From: Eutreptiella sp. 'Long Island Sound 2002'
Lineage: Eukaryota; Protista; Euglenida
Assembly: GCA_964036045.1 (NCBI GenBank)
Contig: OZ038379.1
Location: 72,664,001 to 72,728,000 of the forward strand
Direction: 5' to 3'
DNA: 64,000 nt
A program made the position numbers and the translations under genes. The notes below the pieces were generated by a model. It did not search any database, was not told where the DNA came from, and saw nothing but the letters and a program-made list of their open reading frames with translations. Positions 3,033 through 25,928 of the stretch are shown here, in pieces; positions within the stretch are counted from its first letter, which is position 1; each line of letters starts with the position of its first letter.

Positions 3033-3600
3033 GGTAGGTGGGTAGGTATCTTTGGGAGGTCGGGATGCCTTCTATGAAAATGCAGGAGAAAGGTCTTACC
3101 AAGGGGACGTCCTGTCCCTTTCACTGCCCTAGTTCAGGTGCCTCTTAAGCCGCTCCCGCAGATGCTTGGGAAGGCAGTGTTGCGGCTCCCCGGTCCAGGT
3201 GTTCCAGGTGGGAGGGTGTCCCCATATCTCCATGGGTAGGGCCACATGCCCCCTCCTTCTGGCGGCAGCCCTGGGGTCTGCCCAGCCGTGTGGAGTATCT
3301 CTCACCACAAGGGGTATTGCTCCCGCTAGTCTACGGTACGACCGCCTCACCCTTCTGGCTTGAGTTGCGGGGCCTCTCTGCTTGGCAGGCGACCCCATGC
3401 TGGACTTTGTACCGGCTCGCCTGTCACCGGTTGCTTCCATGGCTCAGGGTGACGTTTGCCATGGTCCCCCGTGCAGCCTGGCCTGGCTCGGACCAGTGAC
3501 CTTCGAGTACCGCCCCTGCTGCTGCCCGAGTGGCTCGGCTGGGTTGCCCCAGTGCGCCCGACCCATGAGGTGTGGGTTTTTTCCCGTCCCTCGGCCGCCC
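3033..3600 (-). mobile_element. 3' end of a non-LTR retroelement with a (TACC)n tail
   Basis: (GGTA)n at 3033-3048. The adjacent ~71 bp match the TSD-flanked insertion at 60848-60920 (about 9 mismatches by eye). A residual ORF lies at 3129-3440 (-). Confidence 0.65.
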
Positions 3601-6600
3601 TACGTGTGCACGTGTGTGCGGTGTCCTGGGCAACTTGGCACAGGTTCACGGACGTGCCTGCTTGGTGCGTTGTGTTGCGTGTGCGGTGTCCTGGGCCACT
3701 TGGCTCCTGTTCGGCGGTGTGCTCGCTCGCCGCGTTACATTGCCTGTGCGTTTTCCTGGGCCACTTGGCGCCTGTTCAGCAGTTTTCCCGCTCGGTGTGT
3801 TGTGTTGCGCATGCGTTGTCATGGGCCACTTGGCTCCCGTTCACCGGTGTTCCCGCTCGGTGCGTTACGTTGCGTGTGCGTTGTCCTGGGCCACTTGGCT
3901 CCTTTTCACCGGTGTGTCCGCTCTGTGTGTTGTGTTGCGTGTGCGGTGTCCTGGGCCACCTGGCTGCTGTTCACCGGTGTGACTGCTCTTCTAATCTGTT
4001 GCACGTGCAGTGTCCAGGGCCACCTGGCTCCTGTTCACAGGTTTGCCTGCTTCGTGTGTTGTGTTGTATGTGCGGTGTCCTGGGCCACTTGGCTCCTCTT
4101 CACCGTTTTGCCCGCTCAGTCCGTTGCTTTGCTTGTGCGGTGTCCTGGGCCATGTGGCTCCCGTCCACCGGTGTGCCCGCTCGATGGCCTGTGTTGCGTG
4201 TGTGGTGTCCCCGGCCACTTGGCTCCTGTACACCGGTGTGCCTGTTTGGTGTGTTGTGTTGCGTGTACGGTCCCCTGAGCCACTTGGCTCCTGTTCACCG
4301 GTGTGCCAGCGCGGTGTGTTGTGTCGCGTGTGTGGTGTCCGAGGCCACTTGGCTCCTGTTCAATGGTGTGCCCGCTCGGTGCGTTGCATTGTTTGTGTGG
4401 TGTCCTGGGCCACTCGGCTCCCTTCCACCCCGCTCTGTGTGTTGTGTTGCGCATGCTGTGTCCAGGGCCACTTGGCTCCTGTTCACCAGTGTGCCTGCTC
4501 GATGTGTTGTGTTGCGTGTGCGGTGTCCTGGGCCAGTTTGCTGCTGTTCAGCGGTGTGCCCGTTCGGTGTGTTGTGCTGCGTGTGCGGTGTCTTGGGCCA
4601 CTTGGCTCCCGTTCAACCGTGTGCCCGTTCGGTATGTTGTGTTGCGTGTGCGGTGTCCTGGGCCACTTGGCTCCGGTTCATCAGTGTGCCTGCTCCGCGT
4701 GTTGTGTTGTGTGTGCGATATCCTGGGCCACTTGGCTCCTGTTCACCGTTGTGCCTGCTCGGTGTGTTGTGTTGCGTGTGCTATGACATGAGCCACTTGG
4801 CTACTTCTCACCCGTGTGCCCGCTCTGTCCGTTGCTTTGGTTGTGCTGTGTCCTGGACCAGTTGGCTCCTGTTCACCGGTGTGCCCGCTCGGTGTGTTGT
4901 GTTGCGTGTGCGGTGTACTGGGCCATTTGGCTCCCGTTCACTGATGTGCCCGGTCGGTGTGTTGTGTTGAGTGTGCGGTGTCCTGGGTCACTTGGCTCCT
5001 GGTCACCGGTGTGCCCCCTCTGTGTGTTGTGTTGTGTGTGCGGTGTCCTGGGCCACTTGGCTCCTGTTCACCGTTGTGCCTGCTCGCTGTGTTGTGTTGC
5101 GTGTGCTATGTCCTGAGCCACTCGGCTCCTTCTCATCGGTGTGCCTGCTCTGTCCGTTGCTTTGGTTGTGCGGTGTCCTGGGCCACTTGGCTCCTGTTCA
5201 CCGGCGTGCCCGCTCGGTGTGTTGGGTTGCTTGTGCGGTGTCCTGGGCCACTCTGCTGCTGTTCACTGTTGTGCCAGCTTGGTATGTTGTGTTGCACGTG
5301 CGGTGTCCTGGGCCACTTAGCTCTCGTTCACCGGTGTTCCTCCTCGGTGTGTTGTGTTGCGTGTGCGGAGTCCTGGGCCACTTGGCTCCTTGTCATCGGT
5401 GTGCCTGCTCTGTCCGTTGCCTTGGTTGTGCGGTGTCCTGGGCCACTTGGCTCCTGCTCACCGGCGTGCCCGCTCGGTGTGTTGGGTTGCTTATGCCGTG
5501 TCCTGGGCCACACCGCCGCTGTTTACTGTTGTGCCAGCTTGGTATGTTGTGTTGCACGTGCGGTTACCAGGGCCGCTTGGCTGCTGTTCACTGGTGTGCC
5601 TGCTCGGTGTGTGGTGTTGCGTGTGCCGTGTCTCATTGGTGTGCCCGCCCTGTCCGTTGCTTTGCTTGTGCCGTGTCCTGGGCCACCTGGCTCCTGTTCA
5701 CTGCTGTGCCCGCTCGGTGGGTTGTGTTGCGTGAGCGGCTTCCTGGGCCACTTGTCTTCTGTTCACCGGTGTGCCTGTTTGGTGTGTTGTGTTGCGTGTG
5801 CGGTGTCCTGGCCCACTTGGCTCCTGTTCACCGGTGTGCCCGCTCGGTGCGTTGCGTTGTTTGTGCTGTGTCCGGGGCCACCCAGCTCCTGTTCACCGGT
5901 GTGCCCGCTCTTCTAATTCGTTGCACGTGCGGTGTCCAGGGCCACCTGGCTCCTGTTCACGGGTGTGCCCGCTCGCTGGGCTGTGTTGCCTGTACGGTGT
6001 CCTGGGCCACCTGGCTCCTGTTCACCGCTGTGCCCGCGCGGTGTGTGGTGTCGCGTGTGCGGTGTCCTGGGCCAGTCGGCTCCTGTTCACCGGTGTGCCC
6101 GCTCGGTGCGTTGCGTTGTTTGTGCGGTGTCCTGGGCCACCTAGCTCCTGTTCACCGGTGTGCCCGCTCTTCTAATTTGTTGCACGTGCGGTGTCCCCGG
6201 CCACTTGGCTGCTGTTCACCGGTGTGCCTGCTCGGTGTGTTGTGTTGCGTGTGTTGTGTCCTGGGCCACTTGGCTCCTGTTCACCGTTGCGCCCGCTCCG
6301 TCCGTTGCTTTGCTTGTGCGGTGTCCTCGGCCACCTGGCTCCTGATCGCCGGTGTGCCTGCTCGGTGGGCTGTGTTGCGTGTGCGGTGTCCTGGGCCACT
6401 TGTCTCCTGTTCACCGGTGTGCCCCTTTGGTGTGTTGTGTTGCGTGTACGGTGTCCTGGGCCACTTGGCTCCTGTTCACCGGTGTGCCCGCGCGGTGTGT
6501 TGTGCCGCGTGTGCGGTGTCCTGGGCCACTTGGTTCCTGTTCACCGGTGTGCCCGCTCGGTGCGTTGCATTGTTTGTGCGGTTTCCTGGGCCACCTAGCT

Positions 6601-9600
6601 CCTGTTCACCGGTGTGCCCGCTCTTTTGTTTTGCTGCACGAACCGTGTCCAGGGCCACTTGGCTCTTGTTCACCGGTGTGCCTGCTTGGTGTGTTGTGTT
6701 GCGTGTGCTGGGTCCTCAGCAACTTGGGTCCTGTTAAACGTTGTGCCCCCTCCGTCCGTTGCCTTGCTCGTGCGGTGTCCTGGGCCACCTGGCTCCTGTT
6801 CACCGGTGTGCCTGCTCGGTGGGCTGTGTTGTGTGTGCGGTGTCCACGGCCACTTGTCTCCCGCTCACCGGTGTGCCTGTTTGGTGTGTTGTGTTGCTTG
6901 TACGGTATCCTGGGCCACTTGGCTCCTGTTCATCGGAGTGCCCGCTCTTCTGTTGCGCATGTGGTGTCCAAGGCCACTTTGCTCCCGTTCACCGGTGTGC
7001 CCGCTCAGTGTGTTGTGGTGCGTGTGCGGTGTCCTGGGCCACTTGGCTCCTGTTCACCGCCGTGCCCGTTCGGTGTGTTTTGTTGCGTGTGCGGTGTCCT
7101 GGGCCACGTAGCTCCTGTTCACCGGTCTGCTCACACTTCTGTATTGTTGCACGTGCAGTGTCCAGGGCTGCTTGGCTCCTGTTCACCGGTGTGCCTGCTC
7201 GGTGTGTGGTGCTGCGTGTGCCGTGTCCTCGGCCACTTGGCTCTCGTTCACCAGTGTGCCTGTTTGGTGTGTTGTGTTGCGTGTACGGTGTCCCCGGCCA
7301 CTTGGCTCCTGTTCACCGGTGTGCCCGAGCGGTGTGTTTTGTCTGGTGTGCGGTGTCCTGGGACACTTGGCTCCAGTTCACCGATGTGCCCGCTCGGTGC
7401 GTTGCGTTCCTTGTGCGGTGTCCTTGGCCACCTAGCTTCTGTTCACCGGTGTGCCCGCTCTTCTAATTTGTTGCATGTGCCGTGTCCAGGGCCACTTGGC
7501 TCCTGTTCACCGGTGTGCCTGCTCGGTGTGTTGTGTTGCGTGTGCCGTGTCCTTTGCCACTTGGCTCCTGTTCACCGTTGTGCCCGCTCCGTCCGTTGCT
7601 TTGCTTGTGCGGTGTCCTGGGCCACCTGGGTCCTGTTCACCGGTGTGCCCGCTCAGTAAGCTGTGATGCGTGTGCGGTGTCCTGGGCCACTTGTCTCCTG
7701 TTCACCAGTGTGCCTGCTCGGTGTGTTGTGTTGCGTGTGCCGTGTCCTGGGCCACTTGGTCCCTGTTCATCGTTGTGCCCGCTCGGTCCGTTGCTTTGCT
7801 TGTGCGGTGTCCTGGGCCACCTGGGTCCTGTTCACCGGTGTGCCCGCTCGGTGGGCTGTGATGCGTGTGCGGTGTCCTGGGACACTTGTCTCCTGTTCAC
7901 CGGTGTGCCTGTTTGGTGTGTTGTGTTGCGTGTACGGTGTCCTGGGCAACTTGGCTCCTGTTCACCGGTGTGTCCGCGCAGTGTGTTGTGTCGCGTGTGC
8001 GGTGTCCTTGGCCATTTGGCTCCTGTTCACGAGCGTGACCACTTGGTGCGTTGCGTTCTTTGTGTTGTGTCCTGGGCCACCTGGTTCCTGTTCACCGGTG
8101 AGCCCGCTCTTCTAGTTTGTTGCACGTGCCGTGTCCAGGGCCACTTGGCTCCCGTTCACCGGTGTGCCTGGTTGGTGTGTTGTGTTGCATGTGCGATGTT
8201 CTCGGCAACTTGGCTCCTGTTCACCGCCGTGCCCGTTCGGTGTGTTGTGTTGCGTGTGCGGTGTCCTGGGCCACTTTTCCCCCGTTCACCGGTGCGCTTG
8301 TTTGGTGTGTTCTGTTGCGTGTACGGTGTCCTGGGCCACTTGGCTCCTGTTTACCGTTGTGCCCGCTCGGTGCGTTGTGTTGTTTGTGCGGTGTCCTGAG
8401 CCACCTAGCTCCTGTTCACCAGAGTGCCCGCTCTTCTGTTGCGCATGTGCTGTCCAAGGCCAATTGGCTCCCGTTGACCGGTGTGCCCGCTCAGTGTGTT
8501 GTGGTGCGTGTGCGGTGTCCTGGGCCACTTGGCTCCTGTTCTCCGCCGTGCTCCTTCGGTGTGTTGTGTTGCGTGTGCGGTGTGCTGGGCCACTTGGCTC
8601 CTGTTCACTGGTGTGCCCGCTCGGTGCGTTGCGTTGTTTGTGCGGTGTCCTGGGCCATCTAGCTCCTGTTCACCGGACTGCCCGCTCTTCTGTTGCGCAT
8701 GTGGTGTCCAAGGCCACTTGGCTCCCGTTCACCGGTGTGCCCGCTCAGTGTGTCGTGGTGCGTGTGCGATGTCCTGGGCCACTTGGCTCCTGTTCACCGC
8801 CGTGCTCATTCGGTGTGTTGTGTTGCGTGTGCGGTGTCCTGGGCCACGTAGCTCCTGTTCACCGGTCTGCTCACACTTCTGTATTGTTGCACGTGCAGTG
8901 TCCAGGGCTGTTTGGCTCCTGTTCACCGGTGTACCTGCTCGGTGTGTGGTGTTGCGTGTGCCGTGTCCTCGGCCACTTGGCTCCTGTTCACCAGTGTGCC
9001 TGTTTGGTGTGTTGTGTTGCGTGTACGGTGTCCTGGGCCACTTGGCTCCTGTTCACCGGTGTGCCCGCACGGTGTGTTTTGTCGGGTGTGCGGTGTCCTG
9101 GGACACTTGGCTCCAGTTCACCACTGTGCCCGCTCGGTGCGTTGCGTTCTTTGTGCGGTGTCCTGGGCCACCTAGCTTCTGTTCACCGCTGTGCCCGCTC
9201 TTCTAATTTGTTGCACGTGCCGTGTCCAGGGCCACTTGGCTCCTGTTCACCGGTGTGCCTGCTCGGTGTGTTGTGTTGTGTGTGCGGTGTCCTGGGCCAC
9301 TTGGCTCCTGTTCACCGTTGTGCCTGCTCCGTCCGTTGCTTTGCTTGTGCGGTGTCCGGGGCCACCTGGGTCCTGTTCACCGGTGTGCCTGCTCGGTGGG
9401 CTATGATGCGTGTGCGGTGTCCTGGGCCACTTGTCTCCTGTTCACCGGTGTGCCTGCTCGGTGTGTTGTAATGCTTGTGCCGTGTCCTGGGCCACTTGCC
9501 TCCTGTTCACCGTTGTGCCCGCTCCGTCCGTTGCTTTGCTTGTGCGGTGTCCTGGGCCACCTGGGTCCTGTTCACCGGTGTGCCCGCTTGGTGGGCTGTG

Positions 9601-9870
9601 ATGCGTGTGCGGTGTCCTGGGCCACTTGTCTCCTGTTCACCGGTGTGCCTGTTTGGTGTGTTGTGTTGCGTGTACGGTGTCCTGGGCCACTTGGCTCCTG
9701 TTCACCGGTGTGTCCGCGCGGTGTGTTGTGTCGCGTGTGCGTTGTCCTGGGACACTTGGCTCCTGTTCACGAGCGTGACCACTCGGTGCGTAGCGTATTT
9801 TGTGTTGTGTCCTGGGCCACCTAGCTCCTGTTCACCGGTGAGCCCGCTCTTCTAGTTTGTTGCACGTGCT
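3600..9870. repeat. Tandem array of a degenerate ~65-bp unit (~95 copies)
   Basis: Unit GTGTGCGGTGTCCTGGGCCACTTGGCTCCTGTTCACCGGTGTGCCCGCTCGGTGTGTTGTGTTGC. CCTGTTCACC ends at 6480, 6545 and 6610 (period 65). Variant units recur in longer blocks. Confidence 0.95.
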
Positions 9871-9899
9871 GGGTGTGGGTCAAACGCACTGCATCCACG

Positions 9900-11360
9900 G
9901 TGGCTCATAGACCGTCCGGTTGCTCAGAGTTGTTTCTTGTTGGGCCGTGTTGTAGTAGGGGAGTCTCACGAGGATTGACTGACAGTTGTAGCAAACCTTG
10001 GTTGCACAAAGTACGTCGGCTTCGAGGTCCACTGGGACGTTCTTTGAGGCGAAGGGTTGTTGACTGGTTGGCGGCGTAGAGGACTCAGAAATTGGACTAA
10101 GGCAGCTGCGCCCAGTACAATTCCGTGGTGCCGCAAAAAAACCCCAAGGGAGGCTTCGGTGTGGTAAAACGGGTCCAGATGATGTCCCGAATATTTGACC
10201 TAGTCAGCAGCTTTTTGTCCCTCCGAGACTTGTTTCGTGAGCCACGCGTAGACACGGTTCTTGTAGGACATTGGAGTACTTGGGCCCGTGCGCTTTCTGC
10301 GTTCTGAGTGGCATTCAGTTTTCAATTGCCTGCGTTGCAGTGGTTCACTTGAGAACTCTGTGATCAATTGGACCTCACGCTGTGCGTACTGCTGAATCTG
10401 CTTGCGGCTTGCTGATTCCATGCGTTGTGTGAGCTGCAAGTACGCCGCAAAGGCATGGGGGAGTGCACTCACGGCAATTGCGTGCCATGCCTCGGTTTGC
10501 TTCATGTGAGTGTGGTGCAACTCAGTTGCTATCCGGCTAATGAGTTCGTCGCGAATAACCGAAGACCGTGCGGTTGCCATTAAGAGCAGGAATTCTTCTT
10601 CAGCGAGTTTTGGGAGCTGAACGGCTGTAGCGGCAAATGTCACGTCGGCTGTAATCGTAGTTCTTTCAGGAAGAGCGTCAACTGCATGCAACTGTTTCCC
10701 GTCTCGGCCGGCGCAGCCATTATAGTCCGTGAGTACCGAGAACCAGCCCAATGAAGACTCAACTTGTGACTCAACGTATTGCGGTTCTTCGTGACGGCTT
10801 GAGGTGACATCCGGAGAGCTGGATGAGGGGCGAAAGACCTGAAAGGCGTCCACAAGATGTGAAGGATGAGGCAACTCTGCGGCGGCAGTAGGCTTATCGT
10901 GGAAACAATCAGCGTCGTAGGGCGCCCATGATCTGTTTCCATTGTGCGAAGACCGCGGTGGCGCTGACAAATCGGCGTTCTGTGGTCGTTCTGGAGGCAC
11001 CAAATGGCTAGTCGTTGAACTCGCTTGCCTGTGTTCCTGTTGCGGCGGGTTGGTGGAGCCACTGCGCTGAGGGGAGAACGTGTGCCTGGGATATTCATAT
11101 TGCGGGGTAGACAAGCCGGTGTAGCTTGGTTGATCTGGCGGGGTCCAAAAGTTGCTCGCTGAAGTCACATGTCTGTGCTCCTGTTGCAGCGGGTTGACAG
11201 AGGCATGGTGCTAAGGAGAGAGAGCGTGTCTGGGATATTCAAAATGCGGGGCAAAGTAGGGGCCTGGCCAATTGGCCTGCGGTTCTGGCCAATTTGACGA
11301 TCGCTGCAGACGGCAGCGTCTTGACTTGCGAAGGGGGCACTGCGAAGAAGGGGGATTTGA
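9900..11360 (-). pseudogene. Decayed ORF inserted in the satellite; possibly gag-like (322-aa open part at 10200-11168)
   Basis: Normal-complexity coding sequence between two blocks of the same satellite. The frame continues past single TAG stops at both ends. It has a Pro/Ser-rich N-terminus with a ~140-bp internal duplication (EYPRH..QQEHR twice), a helical core, and a CYNC motif near 9985 in a shifted frame. Confidence 0.4.
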
Positions 11361-11459: not shown

Positions 11460-11900
11460 CTTTGTGTTGCGTGTGTTGGGTTCTGTGTGCGGTGTCCTAT
11501 GCCACCGGGCTCCTTCTCACTGGTCTGCCCGCTCTGTCCGTTGCTTTGGTTGTGCAGTGTCCTGGGCCACTTGGCTCCTGTTCACCGGCGTGCCCGCTCA
11601 GTGTGTTGGGTTGCTTGTGCAGTGTCCTGGGCCACTTGGCTCCTGCTCACCGGTGTGCCCGCTTGGTGTGTTGTGTTGCACGGGCGGTGTCCTGGGCCAC
11701 TTGGCTCCTGTTCACCGGTGTGCTTGTTTGGTGCGTTGTGTTGAGTGTGTGGCGTCTTTGGCCACTTGGCTCCTGTTCACCGGTGTGCACGCTTGGTGTG
11801 TTGTGCTGTCTGTGCGGTGTCCTGGGCCACTTGGCTCCTGTTCACCAGTGTGCTCGCTCGGTGTGTTGTGCTGTGTGTTGCGTGTGCGGTGTTGCGTGTG
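11460..11900. repeat. Second block of the 65-bp satellite
   Basis: Same unit as 3600-9870. Confidence 0.9.
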
Positions 11901-15636: not shown

Positions 15637-16978
15637 TCAGTGTCCCGGCTGCGGTTCCTGGGTGGTTGTTTGGGACGCATGGGCAATTTGTTTTTGTGGG
15701 TGGGTGGCCTCTATGAGGGGGGGGGTTGGACTGAGTCTGGCAGGTGGTCTGGAGGCAGGGGATAGTGGTAATCGCTGTGCGCCTGTGGGGTGTGTGATGT
15801 GCTGTAGGTGCTGTGTGGTGTGCCCCAGGTGTTGAGACCTTGGGGGGGGGGCGCGGAAGGGGGGGGGATCTTCGGCTAGCCAAGTGAGTGCTTTGGACAG
15901 AGCGCCTTTCAACTGTCGCTGGCGCTGGGGGAGTGCATTTTTAAAAGGCAAAACGCGCTGGGGTTTCGTTTCGCCTGTGTTGGGTGTAGTCATGGCTTCG
16001 TACAGGGTGGAGGGCACCAAAGATTTGACGAAATTTCGTTTGTCTCCCCGGTGGGAGCACTGGGCCCAGGAGGTGCTTGCTACCTGGTTGAAGGGCGGCG
16101 GCCACGCATGCATGAAGCTTTTCACAATGTGGTCAGCGCTGGGGCAATGGGACAAGAAGGAGGCTGCATCGAGGGTGTGTGACTGTGAGCATTTGTGGCA
16201 AATTCGGGGGGTCCTGTCGTTGTGGAATGCATATATAAGAAAATTCATTTTGCCTGATGACCATTTGAAGGGGAGTCCGGAGAACCACGATGAGTGATTG
16301 TGAAAGAAAAAACTGGACGGCACATGGATGTTGTAGTGGTGATGACGGGGGATGAGGGCCCTCGATACAGAGGTTGTCAGGCGATGACAGACGGGCAAGC
16401 TACCGAAGGATACAGTTCTCAGGGGGGGTGGGGGCAGCAACTCAGGAGAGGATGATGAGCTGTATGCAATCCACTTGGAGAACAGATCCGAACATTCATT
16501 CCCCTGAAATCCTGCATGTCCTTTGATCCATGCAAATTGCGTTGACACAAATGTAGGCATTTGAGCTTGAAGAGAGGAGTAAGCCTTAACCCATGTGCTA
16601 TGCGATGAGCGTGATGCCATTAGGTCTGACTGGTGCAATGTGAATCACTTGTTCGTTATCTCCAAGAATAATGCACTGCATGGGTTGGTTTAGGGAGGAT
16701 ACCCATCGAAGAAACATAATGCCGGCCCAGTACTCAGATCCCTCAGGGGAAAGGTAGGGGGATGGGGGGCACAGAACCAGGATTCTACCGTTGGCTTTGT
16801 AGATGGTGGCAGCAGAGCTGAAACCTCCTTGCCCTGCTGAACCATCCAGGTACAGCCAGGTTGTTTCAGAGGAGGCCTCTTGCAGAAGTTGGGATGCTCT
16901 GTTGCAGTTCCACGCTTTGAGGTCTTCACTTCGTAGGGAGTGGGGGGGTAAACCGTGGACCTGGTACAGGTATCCCAA
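15637..16978 (-). pseudogene. LINE RNase H domain plus downstream Cys/His motif (frameshifted)
   Basis: WLYLDGS, GSEY, ILGDN, then WIKGHAGFQGNECSD (the four RNase HI acidic residues and the His loop), followed by CHKCSQSH..HC. Confidence 0.85.
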
Positions 16979-19134
16979 GGGTGTAGATTTTTTTGGGAAC
17001 CCTGGCGATTGAAGGTTGTGTCGTCCCCTGGGAAGTAAATGGATCCTTGGTCGCAGAAGGTATCAGTCACGATGCCTCTGTGGATGCCAGGGTCTGTGTT
17101 TTGGTGGCGTTGTTTGTTTCCCCACTTAGTAACTCTGTTGTTGCGGTATGTGGTGAAACGAACATAGGCCTGTCCATTTTTTTGGAGCAGGTGTGGTGGG
17201 GTGTTGATTTCAGAATTGGTGGTGTTGAATCTTAATTGGAGACTGTGACAGGCGTCGCTGACCAGCTTAAGGACCATCGAAATTTTCTCGTTGAGTGCTG
17301 CTTGCTGAAAAAGTTGGTTGCTTTCGTCCGGGCCCTCGTTGTTCAAGTAATGGATGTCCGCATTGACAGTAGAGATGTTTAGGCAGTGTTGGAAGTGGCG
17401 CCCGTCAAGTCCCCCATGGGGTCTGGGAGTGTATTTGTCTCTGTTAGACACCAACCTGGAGATGCGGTTGCTTTTCTCTGGATCACGGTCAATGGCAATG
17501 TTTTTCCAAATGATGTTTTGCAGGAAGTGAAGCTGTGATTGTTCCAGTGGGTGTGCCATGAGGCGATATTGGAGAGTGGGGATGAGTTGGAGGTTCACCA
17601 GTCGGATATATTCAGAAAGAGTGATGTTGAGTGGGTGTAAGAAAGTGGAAAAAGACGTGATTTCAGATTTAGCCAGTTCATACGTGATAGTGGGGTCGGG
17701 ATCTGTAAACAGATGGACACCGAGGTGTTTGTATACCTTCTGGGGCGCGAGGGTTTTTGGGTCGATGGTTGACAGCCTTTTTCCAGGGGGCGCTGTGATT
17801 GTGGTTTGAGGGGCCTTTCCCATGCTGTGGAGTTCTGTTTTGCTTACGTTGATGTCTAGGCCCCATGCCCTACCCTTGGAGTTGTAGAAGGATAGGATAT
17901 CTTGTATGCGTTGGGAGGATTCAGAGCGGTACAGCAGGTCATCCACAAATGCATGGCTAGATTCATGTTGTGTGATGGGAGTGGACACGTGGTGAGGGAC
18001 AGCGAATAATAAGACATTCACATACAACACGAACAGAATCTGTGATAAGGGACATCCTTGGCAGACGCCCCTGGTTTGCAGGTGTGATGCACTGGTGTGG
18101 CCGTTAACTACCGGGTAATCTCGTGGAGCTCGGTAGAGCCCTCGGATGAGACGGATGAGGGGGGAGGGGAGGCGGTAGTGTTCCAGGGTCTTAAACAGAG
18201 ACCCGTCAGGGACACTGTTGAAAGCTTTGTTGAAATCTATGTAGAGGCTGTATGAAGCCGGGCAGTTTTGGTATTTGGCTAATAGCTGAAATATGTGATC
18301 TGAGCACCGGCGGTATGGAAGGCCCCCGAGCTGGGCTTTGTGGATCAGGCCATAAAACGAGGAAATTTCGTATAGGTGTTTGGCAGCGTGAGTGGCCAAC
18401 ATTTTATAGAGTGTGTTGAGGAGGGCGATTGGTCTGTAGTTCACCGGGTCGTGTGGTGGGCCTTTTTTGTAAAGCAAGACCACGTTGGCTTCCAACCACT
18501 CATCAGGCATATCGTTGGTAAGGTGAAGGCTGCACACAGAGAGCAGAAATCGTTTCACTGCTTCAGGTGAGATGTGGAAGAGGTAACCATTCGTGGAGTC
18601 TCGGCCACCCGCCTTTGAAGGTTTGCAGGAGTGCAGGTAGGAGGTGAATCTGTGCCATGAGATTTCTGGCGTAGGGGTGATGGCCGTGGTGGGGGGGCAC
18701 TTTGGCGTATGCTGGAGGAGTTCTTCGGCAGTGTGTGCACTGGGCTCGTAGTTTAGAGGACCGCCCAGCGTGAGTAGGGTGTCGGAAAAACATTCGGTGA
18801 GACGTTTAGTGTCACATGTTAGTTTGCCTGTGTTTGGGTCTTTTAACGAGGCTGCTCGATGTTCCGTTGGGTTTGCTGCTTCGTTGAGTGTTTTTTTGAT
18901 GTTTGTTTTTTGGATGAGGCACCTGTGTATTTTTGACTGTTTGGATTTGTTGTAAGTGTCATCCCATTGGTGGATTGCATCGTTCAATTGTGCCATTTGG
19001 GCCGAAAACTGCGGGTGCGTTGGGGGGGGGGCATCATTTAACGCCTGGCGAATGGATTTGACGGCTCGGGAGTCGGATTTGATGCGGGGGGCTGTGGTGT
19101 TGTGGTATTGAGCGCTTAGCTCCCGAATGACCAT
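16690..19134 (-). CDS. Non-LTR reverse transcriptase (814-aa open segment; last ~95 aa out of frame)
   Basis: KAGGRD, WLEANVVLLYKKG, NYRPIALLN, YIDFNKAFNSV, GVCQGCPLS, AFVDDLL, LDINVSKT, YKHLGV, PHGGL. Confidence 0.95.
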   Translation of the reverse strand: MVIRELSAQYHNTTAPRIKSDSRAVKSIRQALNDAPPPTHPQFSAQMAQLNDAIHQWDDTYNKSKQSKIHRCLIQKTNIKKTLNEAANPTEHRAASLKDPNTGKLTCDTKRLTECFSDTLLTLGGPLNYEPSAHTAEELLQHTPKCPPTTAITPTPEISWHRFTSYLHSCKPSKAGGRDSTNGYLFHISPEAVKRFLLSVCSLHLTNDMPDEWLEANVVLLYKKGPPHDPVNYRPIALLNTLYKMLATHAAKHLYEISSFYGLIHKAQLGGLPYRRCSDHIFQLLAKYQNCPASYSLYIDFNKAFNSVPDGSLFKTLEHYRLPSPLIRLIRGLYRAPRDYPVVNGHTSASHLQTRGVCQGCPLSQILFVLYVNVLLFAVPHHVSTPITQHESSHAFVDDLLYRSESSQRIQDILSFYNSKGRAWGLDINVSKTELHSMGKAPQTTITAPPGKRLSTIDPKTLAPQKVYKHLGVHLFTDPDPTITYELAKSEITSFSTFLHPLNITLSEYIRLVNLQLIPTLQYRLMAHPLEQSQLHFLQNIIWKNIAIDRDPEKSNRISRLVSNRDKYTPRPHGGLDGRHFQHCLNISTVNADIHYLNNEGPDESNQLFQQAALNEKISMVLKLVSDACHSLQLRFNTTNSEINTPPHLLQKNGQAYVRFTTYRNNRVTKWGNKQRHQNTDPGIHRGIVTDTFCDQGSIYFPGDDTTFNRQGSQKNLHPWDTCTRSTVYPPTPYEVKTSKRGTATEHPNFCKRPPLKQPGCTWMVQQGKEVSALLPPSTKPTVESWFCAPHPPTFPLRDLSTGPALCFFDGYPP

Positions 19135-19157
19135 GGAGGTGTATTTTTGGACCGTAG

Positions 19158-19497
19158 TGAAGCGGTAGCGGCAGGGCCTCCCTACCGCTACCCGCTGTGG
19201 CTCGCACGTGCGCTGAATAGCGCAATTTATGACGTAAAATGGGATTACGAAGGCTACAGAACAATAGCGAGGATTGCCGTTTTTTATGTTAAAATAGCAG
19301 GTTTTTATAATAAATTTATGCTGTTGTGCCCCATTTTGTAATTATTCGCGAGATTTTACTGTTTTTCTGTGTTTTCACAGGCATCTATGTAGATTTGGAA
19401 GGCCTTAGAACAGTTTAAGCAACTTAATCCGACTCACGAAATGTTTGATTCTTGCAGAAATTGCGGTGCTTTGCAAGGGGTCCACGAAAACGCTTCA
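19158..19497 (+). repeat. 5' LTR (340 bp)
   Basis: Direct repeat of 21019-21371. Confidence 0.92.
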
Positions 19498-19509
19498 AAA
19501 CTGTTCTAA
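19498..19509 (+). promoter_or_regulatory. Putative self-priming primer-binding site
   Basis: AAACTGTTCTAA directly after the 5' LTR is the exact reverse complement of TTAGAACAGTTT at 19405-19416 inside the LTR. There is no TGG-type tRNA PBS. Confidence 0.6.
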
Positions 19510-19828
19510 CAACCCTGAACAGGGACAGCCGCCGGCCGCAGCGCATCGCAGCGCCGAGGAGCCGCGCCAACACGCGCTGAAGCCAGGGGGCGCTGGGCGC
19601 AGCGCCAGTCAGCACCGCAACTTGGCCGTCAGCCGCAGCAAGCAGCCAGAGGAGAGGCAGCAAGTGCCTCCGCAGCGTCCCGGATGAGCAGCAGCTACAG
19701 CAGCGGCGTCAGGACGTGGGGACCGCGAAATGGCGGCTACAACCTGGACAGCATGAGCGACGCGTCAGACTGGAGCCCCAGTCCAAGGCCAAGTTCGAGC
19801 CGCAGTCCCGCGTTCGAGCAACAGAGGT

Positions 19829-20524
19829 ATGGCCCTTCCAGCCGTCAACCCTATGGCCGTGGTAACCAGTACTGCGGCAGCACCGGCCGTCCCAAGAGCG
19901 GCAGTACCAGCCGCAATCCGGATTACCGTGACGGCCACCCAGCCGTCCAACGAGAACTCTTCCGCAAGCCGGACCATCGTCAAGCAGCGTGGGAGCGCCA
20001 ACCAGCAGCCTGGAGAACGCCGGAGCGCCAATCAGCGCTCCACCGAAGACAAGGTCCAAGCCGTGGTCACGCAGACCGTGGTCAAGCGTCGAGGGAGCCC
20101 CAACCTGCGCCCCAGAAAGCGCCAGAGTACCGACCAGTACCCCAACGTGGAGCAGAGTTCACCGGAAATCCACGCAACCCCAGTCCCAGTCTCAGTCCCA
20201 GTCCCAGTCCCAAGCTCGGAGATTGCCATCCTCCCAACCGATACGGTGGAGTTCAAGGCCTGGGCCGCAGAGATGACAGCGTGGGCGAGGAATGCAGCAG
20301 CGGAGATCCGGACCCTGAAGTCGGAGCAGGAGAGTCTGCAAGAGCGAGTGCGCCGCCTGGAGAAGACGTCCAAGACAAAGTCCGCTACAGGCGAAGCGGA
20401 GAAAAGGGTGGAAGTCGTGGAGGACTTCCAGACGCCGAAAAAGACCGCCCCAACCAGCGGAGCGACCAACCAAGACAGTGGGACGCAGACGCCTGGCAGT
20501 GGCAGCCGTCGTTGGAGACGGTAA
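19829..20524 (+). CDS. LTR-element internal ORF (231 aa) with a C-terminal coiled coil; function unknown
   Basis: Heptad-like WAAEMTAWARNAAAEIRTLKSEQESLQERVRRLEK. It overlaps an alternative 282-aa frame (19684-20532), so the true N-terminus is uncertain. Confidence 0.4.
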   Translation: MALPAVNPMAVVTSTAAAPAVPRAAVPAAIRITVTATQPSNENSSASRTIVKQRGSANQQPGERRSANQRSTEDKVQAVVTQTVVKRRGSPNLRPRKRQSTDQYPNVEQSSPEIHATPVPVSVPVPVPSSEIAILPTDTVEFKAWAAEMTAWARNAAAEIRTLKSEQESLQERVRRLEKTSKTKSATGEAEKRVEVVEDFQTPKKTAPTSGATNQDSGTQTPGSGSRRWRR

Positions 20525-20527
20525 TAA

Positions 20528-20828
20528 TTTAAAATTCCGTTTGTTGGAACACCTGTGGGCAAGTCCAGTCTTGTCAGACTTGCCGTGCTGAGAGCCCAGT
20601 CTTGTCAGGCTCCACCAACCAGGTATATATGTGGGTCTTAAAACCCATGTATATATGGGGCAGATCAACCCCTGGCACACGCACCCGCACTTGTACAATA
20701 CAGTGCACGGTGCCTGGGTAAGGCACGAACTGACACAGCAACATGGATTTGATGCTGGATTACAGTACTGTGTGCGTGCCTTTCCTGTTGTTTGGTTTTT
20801 AAAAGCATGGAGGTTTTCGGGAAACTGA
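20528..20828 (+). pseudogene. Possible degenerate small-GTPase-like segment
   Basis: KIPFVGTP-VGKSSLVRL (G1-like, one residue short), then after a frameshift PT-VG..H...INPWHT..VHGAWVRHELT...F...PVV, following the Ran/Rab motif order. Confidence 0.3.
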
Positions 20829-21006
20829 AAATCTCGCCAGGTTTTCAAAACAAACGGGGCAGGCCACCCAAGGCCTTTTTCTTAATCTTTTCCTAGTGAG
20901 GCAAAGCAGGTTTTTGCCTGAGGGTAGTATTGGTGCTCCCCACCGGACACCTAGGAAAAGGCTACCTCTGGGGTTTGTTTTTCCCCTTGGGGGATAAACA
21001 AACCTT

Positions 21007-21018
21007 TAAGTAGGGGGG
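21007..21018 (+). promoter_or_regulatory. Polypurine tract
   Basis: TAAGTAGGGGGG immediately before the 3' LTR. Confidence 0.7.
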
Positions 21019-21371
21019 TGAAGCGCTAGCGGCAGGGTCTCCCTACTGCTACCCACTGTGGCTCGCACGTGCGCTGAATAGCGCAATTTATGACGTAAGA
21101 TGGGATTACGAAGGCTACAGAACAATAGCGAGGATTGCCGTTTTTTATATTAAAATAGCAGTTTTTTATAATAAATTTATGCTGTTGTGCCCCATTTTGT
21201 AATTATTCGCGAGATTTTATTGTTTATCCGTGTTTTCACAGGCATCTATGTAGATTTGGAAGGCCTGTGGCTAACGCCTTAGAACAGTATAAGCAACTTA
21301 AACCGACTCACGAAATGTTCGATTCTTGCAGAAATTGCGGTGCTTTGCAAGGGGTCCACGAAAACGCTTCA
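21019..21371 (+). repeat. 3' LTR (353 bp)
   Basis: Direct repeat of the 5' LTR with scattered substitutions and a 13-nt indel near 21267. Confidence 0.92.
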
Positions 21372-21375
21372 GTAG

Positions 21376-22290
21376 CAAGGCGGGTGTTTTTGATGAGAGG
21401 GGTAAATGATTGGCACCAATCAGACATTTCTTTCAGTGCATCGTTGAACGTGCTGATCTCAGACTTGTTGAGCTTTCTGAAAACACGTTTGGTAATTGTA
21501 GATGAGTGCAGGGGGGGGGGGGGGGCAGAAAGGGGGCACGAGGAGGGATGGTGATCAGTAGCACGGTTCTCTGAGTGAATGCTGGCATCCAAAAGGGACA
21601 TCTTCTCTAGTGAGGCCGGGGAAATGAAAATGTAGTCTAGTCTAGATGAGCTGGTACGGTGTCCTTGTGGATACCTGGTGGACTCGCGTGTTGTAGGGTT
21701 AGCCAGGCGGTAGGTATTGCCTAGTAGGGGTGGGCTGGCCGTGGCTGGGTGTCTGATCCATGGCCAATGATTGTCACTCAGAAGCCCCTGGCTGTCCAAG
21801 GCGGGATGAATCAGACAATTGAAGTCACCCCCCAACAGGAAGCTTGGAAATTGCTTGAGGAGGGGGCGTAAGCTGGTTTCCACTTTCCTTCTCCATACCT
21901 CGCCTGCAGGCGCGTACACAGAAGCGACTAGGAGAGGTGGTGTACCGGGCAGGGTTAGGAGGGCAGCTGTGATGAGTCCATCTTTGTATCGATTATCGCA
22001 AGGGGTGACTGGCTTAGAAGGGGTGAGAAGGCTAAACCGGACCCGTGTTCGTGGTGGCGGGATAAGTTTGAGAAAATCACACCTCTGTGACCTCTTTGGT
22101 TGTAAATGTGGGGCAGGAGGGTTTTCTTTTCGAGTTCTTGAAGGAAAACAATGTCGAAGCCTTGCTTGAAGTGTTGCAAAAGAAGGGGGGTCCAAGGCTT
22201 CTTTTCTGTAACGTGGGTGACGGCACAGATGGTGTGGATTAGGCTTTTTGGTGATGACTTTGCCAGAGCGTAGCCTTTTTTCATTTTGGT
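21376..22290 (-). pseudogene. LINE APE-type endonuclease (one frameshift near 22020)
   Basis: GFDIVFLQE, GSGLAFS, LLVASVYAP, LLGGDFN, SRLDYIF, TDHHP. Confidence 0.92.
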
Positions 22291-25888: not shown

Positions 25889-25914
25889 GGAAAAAATAGA
25901 CACTCAGAAAGTGT
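25889..25914 (-). other. Euglenid spliced-leader relic at the LINE 5' end
   Basis: ACACTTTCTGAGTGTCTATTTTTTCC vs the euglenid SL ACACTTTCTGAGTGTCTATTTTTTTTCG (recalled from memory); the first 24 nt are identical. It is not followed by a GT donor. Confidence 0.9.
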
Positions 25915-25928
25915 GCGGCCCTGTTTGG

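Follow-up and report, generated by a model that had tools for sequence, protein, structure and literature searches.

Self-priming of reverse transcription has been shown experimentally for the Tf1 element, in which 11 nucleotides (nt) anneal to the primer-binding site (PBS), with RNase H cleaving between nt 11 and nt 12 (PMC7175516). The same mode of priming has been predicted for Tj1, Tcn1, the vertebrate sushi elements, a moss chromovirus clade, and the plant TAR copia elements (PMC4600332, PMC6317226), and about 12% of the plant elements surveyed are of the predicted self-priming type (PMC6317226). Our literature search found no report of self-priming in Euglenozoa and none linking it to Euglena. 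The element described here lies in a 64-kb window (the whole stretch of DNA that was analyzed) of a euglenid genome of 2.28 Gb; the published Euglena gracilis assembly is of 2.37 Gb, with LTR elements at 22 to 33% (PMC11252322). On the evidence given below, we propose, with a probability of roughly 80%, that it belongs, as an old copy, to an abundant family of LTR retrotransposons that depend on a helper and are primed by 12 nt of their own RNA through the mechanism known from Tf1.

The stretch from 19158 to 21371 of the window is a real nonautonomous LTR retrotransposon of 2.2 kb (Table 1). An earlier note on this DNA had read an LTR element here, and the structural features of one are all present: TG..CA repeats with short inverted termini (TGAAGCG/CGCTTCA), a 4-bp target-site duplication (GTAG), a polypurine tract (PPT), and a PBS. 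Further, the element interrupts a LINE whose reading frame is open to both edges of the insertion and is restored once 2,218 nt (the element and one copy of the duplication) are discounted, at which point the two frames coincide. The LINE itself starts with the euglenid spliced leader (SL), ACTTTCTGAGTGTCTATTTTTT..., at window positions 25889 to 25928 on the minus strand (SL sequence from PMC6242988), and it was by this leader that the host was placed among the euglenids. The two LTRs differ by 13 substitutions over 340 aligned positions, a divergence of 3.8%, and by a single 13-nt indel: the 5' LTR of this copy is without GCCTGTGGCTAAC, at a site just upstream of the 12-mer discussed below, and the same 13 nt are present in its 3' LTR and in the other copies of the family. 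Elsewhere in the window, a 65-nt unit is repeated in tandem about 90 times (positions 3543 to 9900; copies 60 to 89% alike), forming a large array, and a related block (11465 to 11890) lies 2 kb beyond it.

Table 1. Window positions of the LTR retrotransposon, its parts, and the LINE in which it is inserted
Feature	Position	Strand	Remark
Target-site duplication, left, GTAG	19154-19157	+	Directly before the 5' LTR
5' LTR, 340 nt, TGAAGCG...CGCTTCA	19158-19497	+	Direct repeat with 21019-21371
Pyrimidine-rich tract ending in AG (AG = 19379-19380)	19358-19380	+	Putative trans-splice acceptor; SL fusions at exactly this point at three loci
Predicted self-primer TTAGAACAGTTT	19405-19416	+	Predicted 5' end of the genomic RNA and start of R
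AAGC	19417-19420	+	Pairs with GCTT 19492-19495 in the folds, with a CA bulge between
Primer-binding site AAACTGTTCTAA	19498-19509	+	Offset 0 from the LTR end
5' leader	19510-19683	+	Small hairpin CCCTG-AA-CAGGG at 19515-19526
Family ORF	19684-20532	+	Split in the window copy (frames 19684-20532 and 19829-20524)
(CCCAGT)n-like expansion	20180-20213	+	Throws the window copy out of frame; other copies have one frame throughout
Noncoding 3' part of the internal region	20533-21007	+	92-94% identity in all 30 fetched copies
Polypurine tract AAGTAGGGGGG	21008-21018	+	Directly before the 3' LTR
3' LTR, 353 nt	21019-21371	+	Copy of the 12-mer at 21279-21290 (TTAGAACAGTAT) with one substitution
Target-site duplication, right, GTAG	21372-21375	+	Directly after the 3' LTR
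Host LINE interrupted by the element	16690-22195	-	RT ORF 16690-19134; endonuclease ORF 21308-22195

A 25-mer spanning the LTR end, the PBS, and the beginning of the leader matches 364 loci in the genome (control, 0), and we accordingly state the size of the family, from this count, as at least 364 copies. The 1.52-kb interior is complete in all 30 copies fetched, at 92 to 94% identity, and some copies of the family form LTR-interior-LTR-interior arrays. The family has a single ORF, of 274 amino acids in most of the 30, with an N-terminal part rich in serine, proline, and arginine followed by a coiled coil that ends in RRWRR. A Pfam search of the element and its ORF returned no domain, with protease, reverse transcriptase (RT), RNase H, and integrase all absent; in a search against 5.8 billion proteins, the ORF matched only members of the same family in another assembly, and a protein atlas search gave no lead. 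Four apparent divergent relatives of the ORF (P0011 and P0013 to P0015) turned out to be frameshifted copies of the same family, and a weak match (E = 0.03) to the ORF of a further family, L067/L068, is no evidence of homology. In one family copy (L098, 565-691; G000 C1:605314-605440), a second copy of the leader immediately follows the first codons of the ORF and begins exactly at the junction TTCA/AAACTGTTCTAA, which suggests a template switch at the PBS.

The 5' LTR is followed without a gap by 12 nt, AAACTGTTCTAA, whose reverse complement occurs without a mismatch at positions 19405 to 19416 of that LTR. The latter sequence, TTAGAACAGTTT, is found just once in the 64-kb window; the continuous pairing covers exactly 12 nt, with the adjoining base unpaired on both sides, and no TGG, the mark of a tRNA-type PBS, occurs in the 33 nt downstream of the LTR. 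The earlier note had described this complement and the missing TGG, and both stand exactly as it placed them. In all 30 fetched copies, the 12-mer/PBS pair is either intact or in single-base decay; the pair is thus the state of the family rather than a peculiarity of the window copy. Minimum-energy and centroid folds of the region from R through U5 to the PBS place the 5' end against the PBS in each of the three families folded, with modest z-scores of about -2, and in the folds of the window family the predicted helix is lengthened by AAGC/GCUU across a CA bulge.

Comparison between families offers a natural test of this pairing, and it was here that a search for compensatory change in PBS and LTR, as called for by the earlier note, divided into two outcomes. 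Between homologous families, compensation is found. A sister family (L057; C1:127309762-127313055, plus strand) has a 498-nt LTR, TGACGC...CCGCTTCA, a PPT, AAGGAGGGGGG, and no ORF; its two LTRs are identical over the 94 nt visible, and it shows homology to the window family both around the PPT/LTR start and at the end of the LTR. The PBS of this sister family, AAATTCTTGTAC, pairs without a mismatch with a site in its own LTR, GTACAAGAATTT, that begins 278 nt short of the LTR end. This PBS differs from that of the window family at positions 4, 6, 9, and 12, i.e., at 4 of 12, and at all four the LTR partner matches. A search for CGCTTCA followed by variants of the PBS brought up a third recurrent PBS, AAAGTTTTCTA, for which the LTR site TAGAAAACTTT was predicted beforehand; a pattern search linking the LTR site and this PBS within 60 to 90 nt matched the prediction exactly at five loci (control, 0). 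At these loci, TAGAAAACTTT precedes CGCTTCA by 63 nt, and AAGC comes next after the site, as it does in the window family. Across the three homologous families, this amounts to six compensated differences, at positions 4, 6, 9, and 12.

Within the window family, the search for compensation came out the other way. Single-copy mutations in either 12-mer are uncompensated, and for the PBS variant AAAATGTTCTA, no compensating LTR change was found. A subgroup of three copies (L012, L025, and L026) has T>G at position 2 of the primer and a PBS without the matching change. This is tolerable in the self-priming model, because new LTRs copy that base from the 3' LTR and the PBS copies it from the primer; the substitution fits the model but does not count as support for it.

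The layout recurs in an unrelated family. L068/L067 has 304-nt LTRs, a 4-bp duplication, and an 11-nt PBS, ATCCCGTTCTC, at offset 0; the complement, GAGAACGGGAT, is in its 3' LTR, and the copy in the 5' LTR bears a CpG>TpG change that still permits a G-U pair. No other nucleotide similarity between this family and the window family was detected. In four of four families, the paired block is 11 to 12 nt long and begins flush with the LTR end (offset 0), and the chance expectations in further families are 1.6e-4 and 3e-5. The wider group is large: TTTAAG.AGGGGGG followed by TGA.GC, a motif of the PPT and LTR start, occurs at 534 further loci of sister families (control, 0).

Several other sequences deserve mention. 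In a sister family whose LTR starts with TGATGC (L096, 290-330 and 5630-5670; L099, 230-270), the apparent LTR end is spanned by a local hairpin of 11 nt, TTTGAAGGTTC/GAACCTTCAAA, in place of a distant self-complement. Very short sister elements form tandem LTR-interior arrays, in which the PPT/LTR-start motif recurs with periods of 1,246 and 1,724 nt (G000 C1:194502957-194506714, C1:194566733-194570490, and C2:71883556-71887023). The near-matches GCTTCA/AAACTGGTCAAAAC and GGTTCA/AAGCTGTTCTAG (L072 to L074) were set aside, having neither a self-complement nor similarity to the element, as was a candidate (L058) that falls within an antisense pol.

Copies in which something went wrong provide evidence of a different kind. 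A pattern search for the LTR end and PBS without the normal leader afterwards found three loci (L069, L070, and L071) in which the PBS is continued without a gap by inverted LTR sequence, the reverse complement of the bases that immediately precede the 12-mer. On the opposite strand, the junction in L069 (654-760; G000 C1:28818290-28818396) reads nt 2 to 26 of the SL, 36 nt of LTR, the 12-mer, and, in antisense, U5, R, U3, and interior, in this order; the 36 nt start exactly after the pyrimidine-tract/AG acceptor of the LTR. In all three loci, the last base of the 12-mer is joined to antisense U5, L070 and L071 being shorter versions of the same arrangement. Beyond the junction the loci diverge: L069, after the copy of the leader, resumes in the interior at a 4-nt microhomology, the copied extension of L070 connects directly to the interior, which it enters at element position 1383, and that of L071 is followed by unrelated DNA. 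Three loci, L069, C11:26130926, and C17:4486065, have the SL fused to the LTR at one and the same point, and the combination of SL with the 12-mer/antisense-U5 order is that of one locus, L069.

From this arrangement, we read the tract at 19358 to 19380 as an SL trans-splice acceptor, after which the exon would start at G 19381. The order of parts in L069 is as expected if the primer RNA was still joined to minus-strand DNA and if plus-strand synthesis later ran through to the 5' end of that RNA; the primer in this case would have been a trans-spliced LTR transcript ending with the 12-mer. The 12-mer/antisense-U5 junctions set the 3' boundary of the predicted primer, which fits a cut right after the 12-mer. 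L069 to L071 look like failed or aberrant second-strand transfers, of the kind to be expected if the plus-strand strong-stop DNA has a nonmatching 3' tail. Two other origins were considered and rejected for L069. A fold-back of plus-strand strong-stop DNA cannot account for the inverted part switching to SL exactly at the splice acceptor, which means that the template was spliced RNA; nor can a palindromic DNA rearrangement account for L069, given that the adjacent sense LTR is complete.

The proposed replication cycle would run as follows. The genomic RNA would start at or next to 19405, and its first 12 nt would fold back onto the 12 nt after U5, in a helix extended by AAGC/GCUU. The RNase H of the helper would cut after nt 12, and the freed 3' end would prime minus-strand DNA through U5. 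The plus strand would later copy the whole primer, such that the PBS is rewritten from the LTR in each cycle, and RT, RNase H, and integrase would be supplied in trans by an autonomous element. Rewriting of this kind would explain why PBS and LTR site covary between families. It also bears on the start of transcription: if the plus strand copies the whole primer and the PBS is 12 nt long, then the primer would be 12 nt and the 5' end of the RNA would lie at about 19405, at or next to which we place the predicted start. The proposal of self-priming made in the earlier note is strengthened on four counts, by the covariation between families, the successful prediction of TAGAAAACTTT, the unrelated family with the same layout, and the L069 to L071 junctions.

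The alternative that survives best, although we consider it unlikely, retains self-priming and lets the priming RNA start upstream of 19405, e.g., as a read-through transcript trans-spliced at 19380/81, with trimming to 12 nt on both sides. L069, apparently primed by an RNA with the SL and 36 nt upstream of the 12-mer, speaks for such a start, as do the strength of the LTR acceptor, used at three loci, and the fact that no recognizable promoter element was seen before 19405. However, where an upstream extension was present, in L069 to L071, it was copied into DNA and yielded rearranged, dead-end copies, whereas normal copies, at 364 loci, have the PBS followed directly by the leader. Moreover, the complementarity ends at exactly 11 to 12 nt in every family, as would be expected if the 5' end of the primer is the 5' end of the RNA.

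Considerably less probable is the idea that the LTR-PBS helix is structural, with a role in packaging, dimerization, or circularization, and that priming is actually done by a fragment of a host tRNA or by some other small RNA. There are retroviral U5-leader helices around the PBS that invite the comparison, half-tRNA primers exist in Ty1/copia lineages (PMC6317226), and our own tRNA comparison covered eight tRNA species of the genome (Val, Ala, Lys, two Arg, Ile, Asp, and Met), none of which is complementary to the PBS region over 8 nt or more; an Rfam search of the element matched no family. A stronger argument against a tRNA primer than this comparison of eight species comes from the homologous families, whose PBSs differ at 2 to 4 of 12 positions, each matching its own LTR, a pattern incompatible with one host primer for all of them. 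The constant position of the paired block, flush with the LTR end in all four families, and the joining of antisense U5 to the LTR 12-mer itself in L069 to L071 also argue against a helix that is merely structural. Finally, although the local AT-richness of the LTR does lift the expectation above 330/4^12, coincidence may be dismissed, with an expectation of 4.7e-5 computed from the LTR base composition (the earlier note had given roughly 2e-5, higher with AT bias), no such match in 20,000 shuffled LTRs, recurrence of the geometry in three further families, and a prediction that held.

With self-priming by the first 12 nt of the RNA as the preferred reading, a broader scenario may be entertained, albeit tentatively and as something we would sooner doubt than expect. 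A large group of euglenid LTR retrotransposons, several hundred copies sharing the PPT, LTR start, and LTR end, might self-prime as a whole, and trans-splicing at the LTR acceptor might separate two fates of the RNA, one as an mRNA, which would give dead-end cDNA if it served as a primer, and the other as a replication-competent RNA, a fate reserved for RNA whose first base is exactly that of the 12-mer. Copies like L069 would then be a natural record of the primer on minus-strand DNA.

The genome has approximately 27,000 integrase candidates, and the helper that such a cycle would depend on was sought through the ends of the element and in a few candidate elements. The expectation that an autonomous partner sharing the LTR should exist elsewhere in the genome found no support: the best 30 genomic matches share one interior, and pattern searches at both ends, for the LTR end with the PBS or the PPT with the LTR start in any context other than the neighboring bases of the family itself, returned no recurrent context and no partner. 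In three integrase-bearing elements that were examined, the signal of a self-complementary PBS is absent from the readable parts. The first is an 18-kb chromovirus (L064+L063+L061+L062; G000 C9:22007605-22032100, minus strand) with 2,113-nt LTRs that are 99.3% identical and ORFs of 856, 1,583 (RT, RNase H, integrase, and chromodomain), and 520 amino acids; the sequence after its LTR has no self-complement, and it was rejected as the helper. The second (L075+L065; G000 C11:61431500-61443290, minus strand) is arranged head to tail with a period of 8,426 nt, and the third (L066) is a 10-kb element; both were set aside with no PBS signal in the parts read and LTR ends undefined. The upstream edge of the 8.4-kb tandem unit adjoins a second, inverted copy of the ~190 nt with which the unit begins, and downstream of pol, before the following unit, there is a tRNA-like stretch (..GGTTCAATTCC..). 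L096, a unit of 5.3 kb that is bounded by two PPT marks, was rejected for want of a pol domain. The best integrase matches (82.8 bits, in frames of 296 to 374 amino acids) are on the very short contigs C1052, C1397, C1527, and C2232 of G000, and these may represent IS-type transposases of contaminating bacteria instead of retroelements.

With respect to known nonautonomous elements, the family resembles the LARD, TRIM, and gag-only derivatives (such as BARE-2 and Dasheng) in having LTRs, a PBS, and a PPT but no pol, in its high copy number, and in mobilization that would have to occur in trans. Classical nonautonomous LTR elements have a helper that shares their LTR. In contrast, no element with the same LTR ends and a different interior emerged from pattern searches of this genome, and the family has a 274-amino-acid ORF that, unlike what is seen in the LARD, TRIM, and gag-only derivatives, is without a relative outside the family.

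The Tcn1 clade of Cryptococcus and mosses, the vertebrate sushi elements, and the plant TAR/Houba elements of the Ty1/copia type have self-priming predicted from the complementarity of PBS and LTR, as here; these elements, however, are autonomous and placed by RT phylogeny, and the window element is nonautonomous. Self-priming in abundant, helper-dependent families of Euglenozoa would widen its known range to a distant eukaryotic supergroup. The homologous families in which PBS and LTR site change together are a natural test set, and annotation pipelines that rely on a tRNA-type PBS to recognize LTR elements are likely to misjudge families of this kind.

The closest parallels are Tf1 and Tf2 of Schizosaccharomyces pombe and Tj1 of Schizosaccharomyces japonicus. 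Like these, the window element has a PBS directly after the 5' LTR that is complementary to a short stretch of the LTR (11 nt in Tf1; 11 to 12 nt in the window element and its relatives), no tRNA-type PBS, and a predicted fold-back of the RNA 5' end onto the PBS (PMC7175516, PMC4600332). Unlike them, it is without gag-pol, and we liken it to Tf1 by the mechanism of priming alone and not by clade; further, unlike the experimentally established case of Tf1, its priming is read from the sequence together with genomic fossils. Those fossils have a value of their own, since aberrant copies that keep the RNA upstream of the primer, once with the SL, are direct genomic evidence of what primed reverse transcription. 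A last difference from Tf1, Tf2, and Tj1 lies in the host, a euglenid with SL trans-splicing, and in the LTR, which has a putative trans-splice acceptor of its own, located upstream of the primer at a distance of 24 nt (or of 37 nt where the 13-nt deletion is absent). Copies of the L069 type also tie the replication of a retroelement to trans-splicing.
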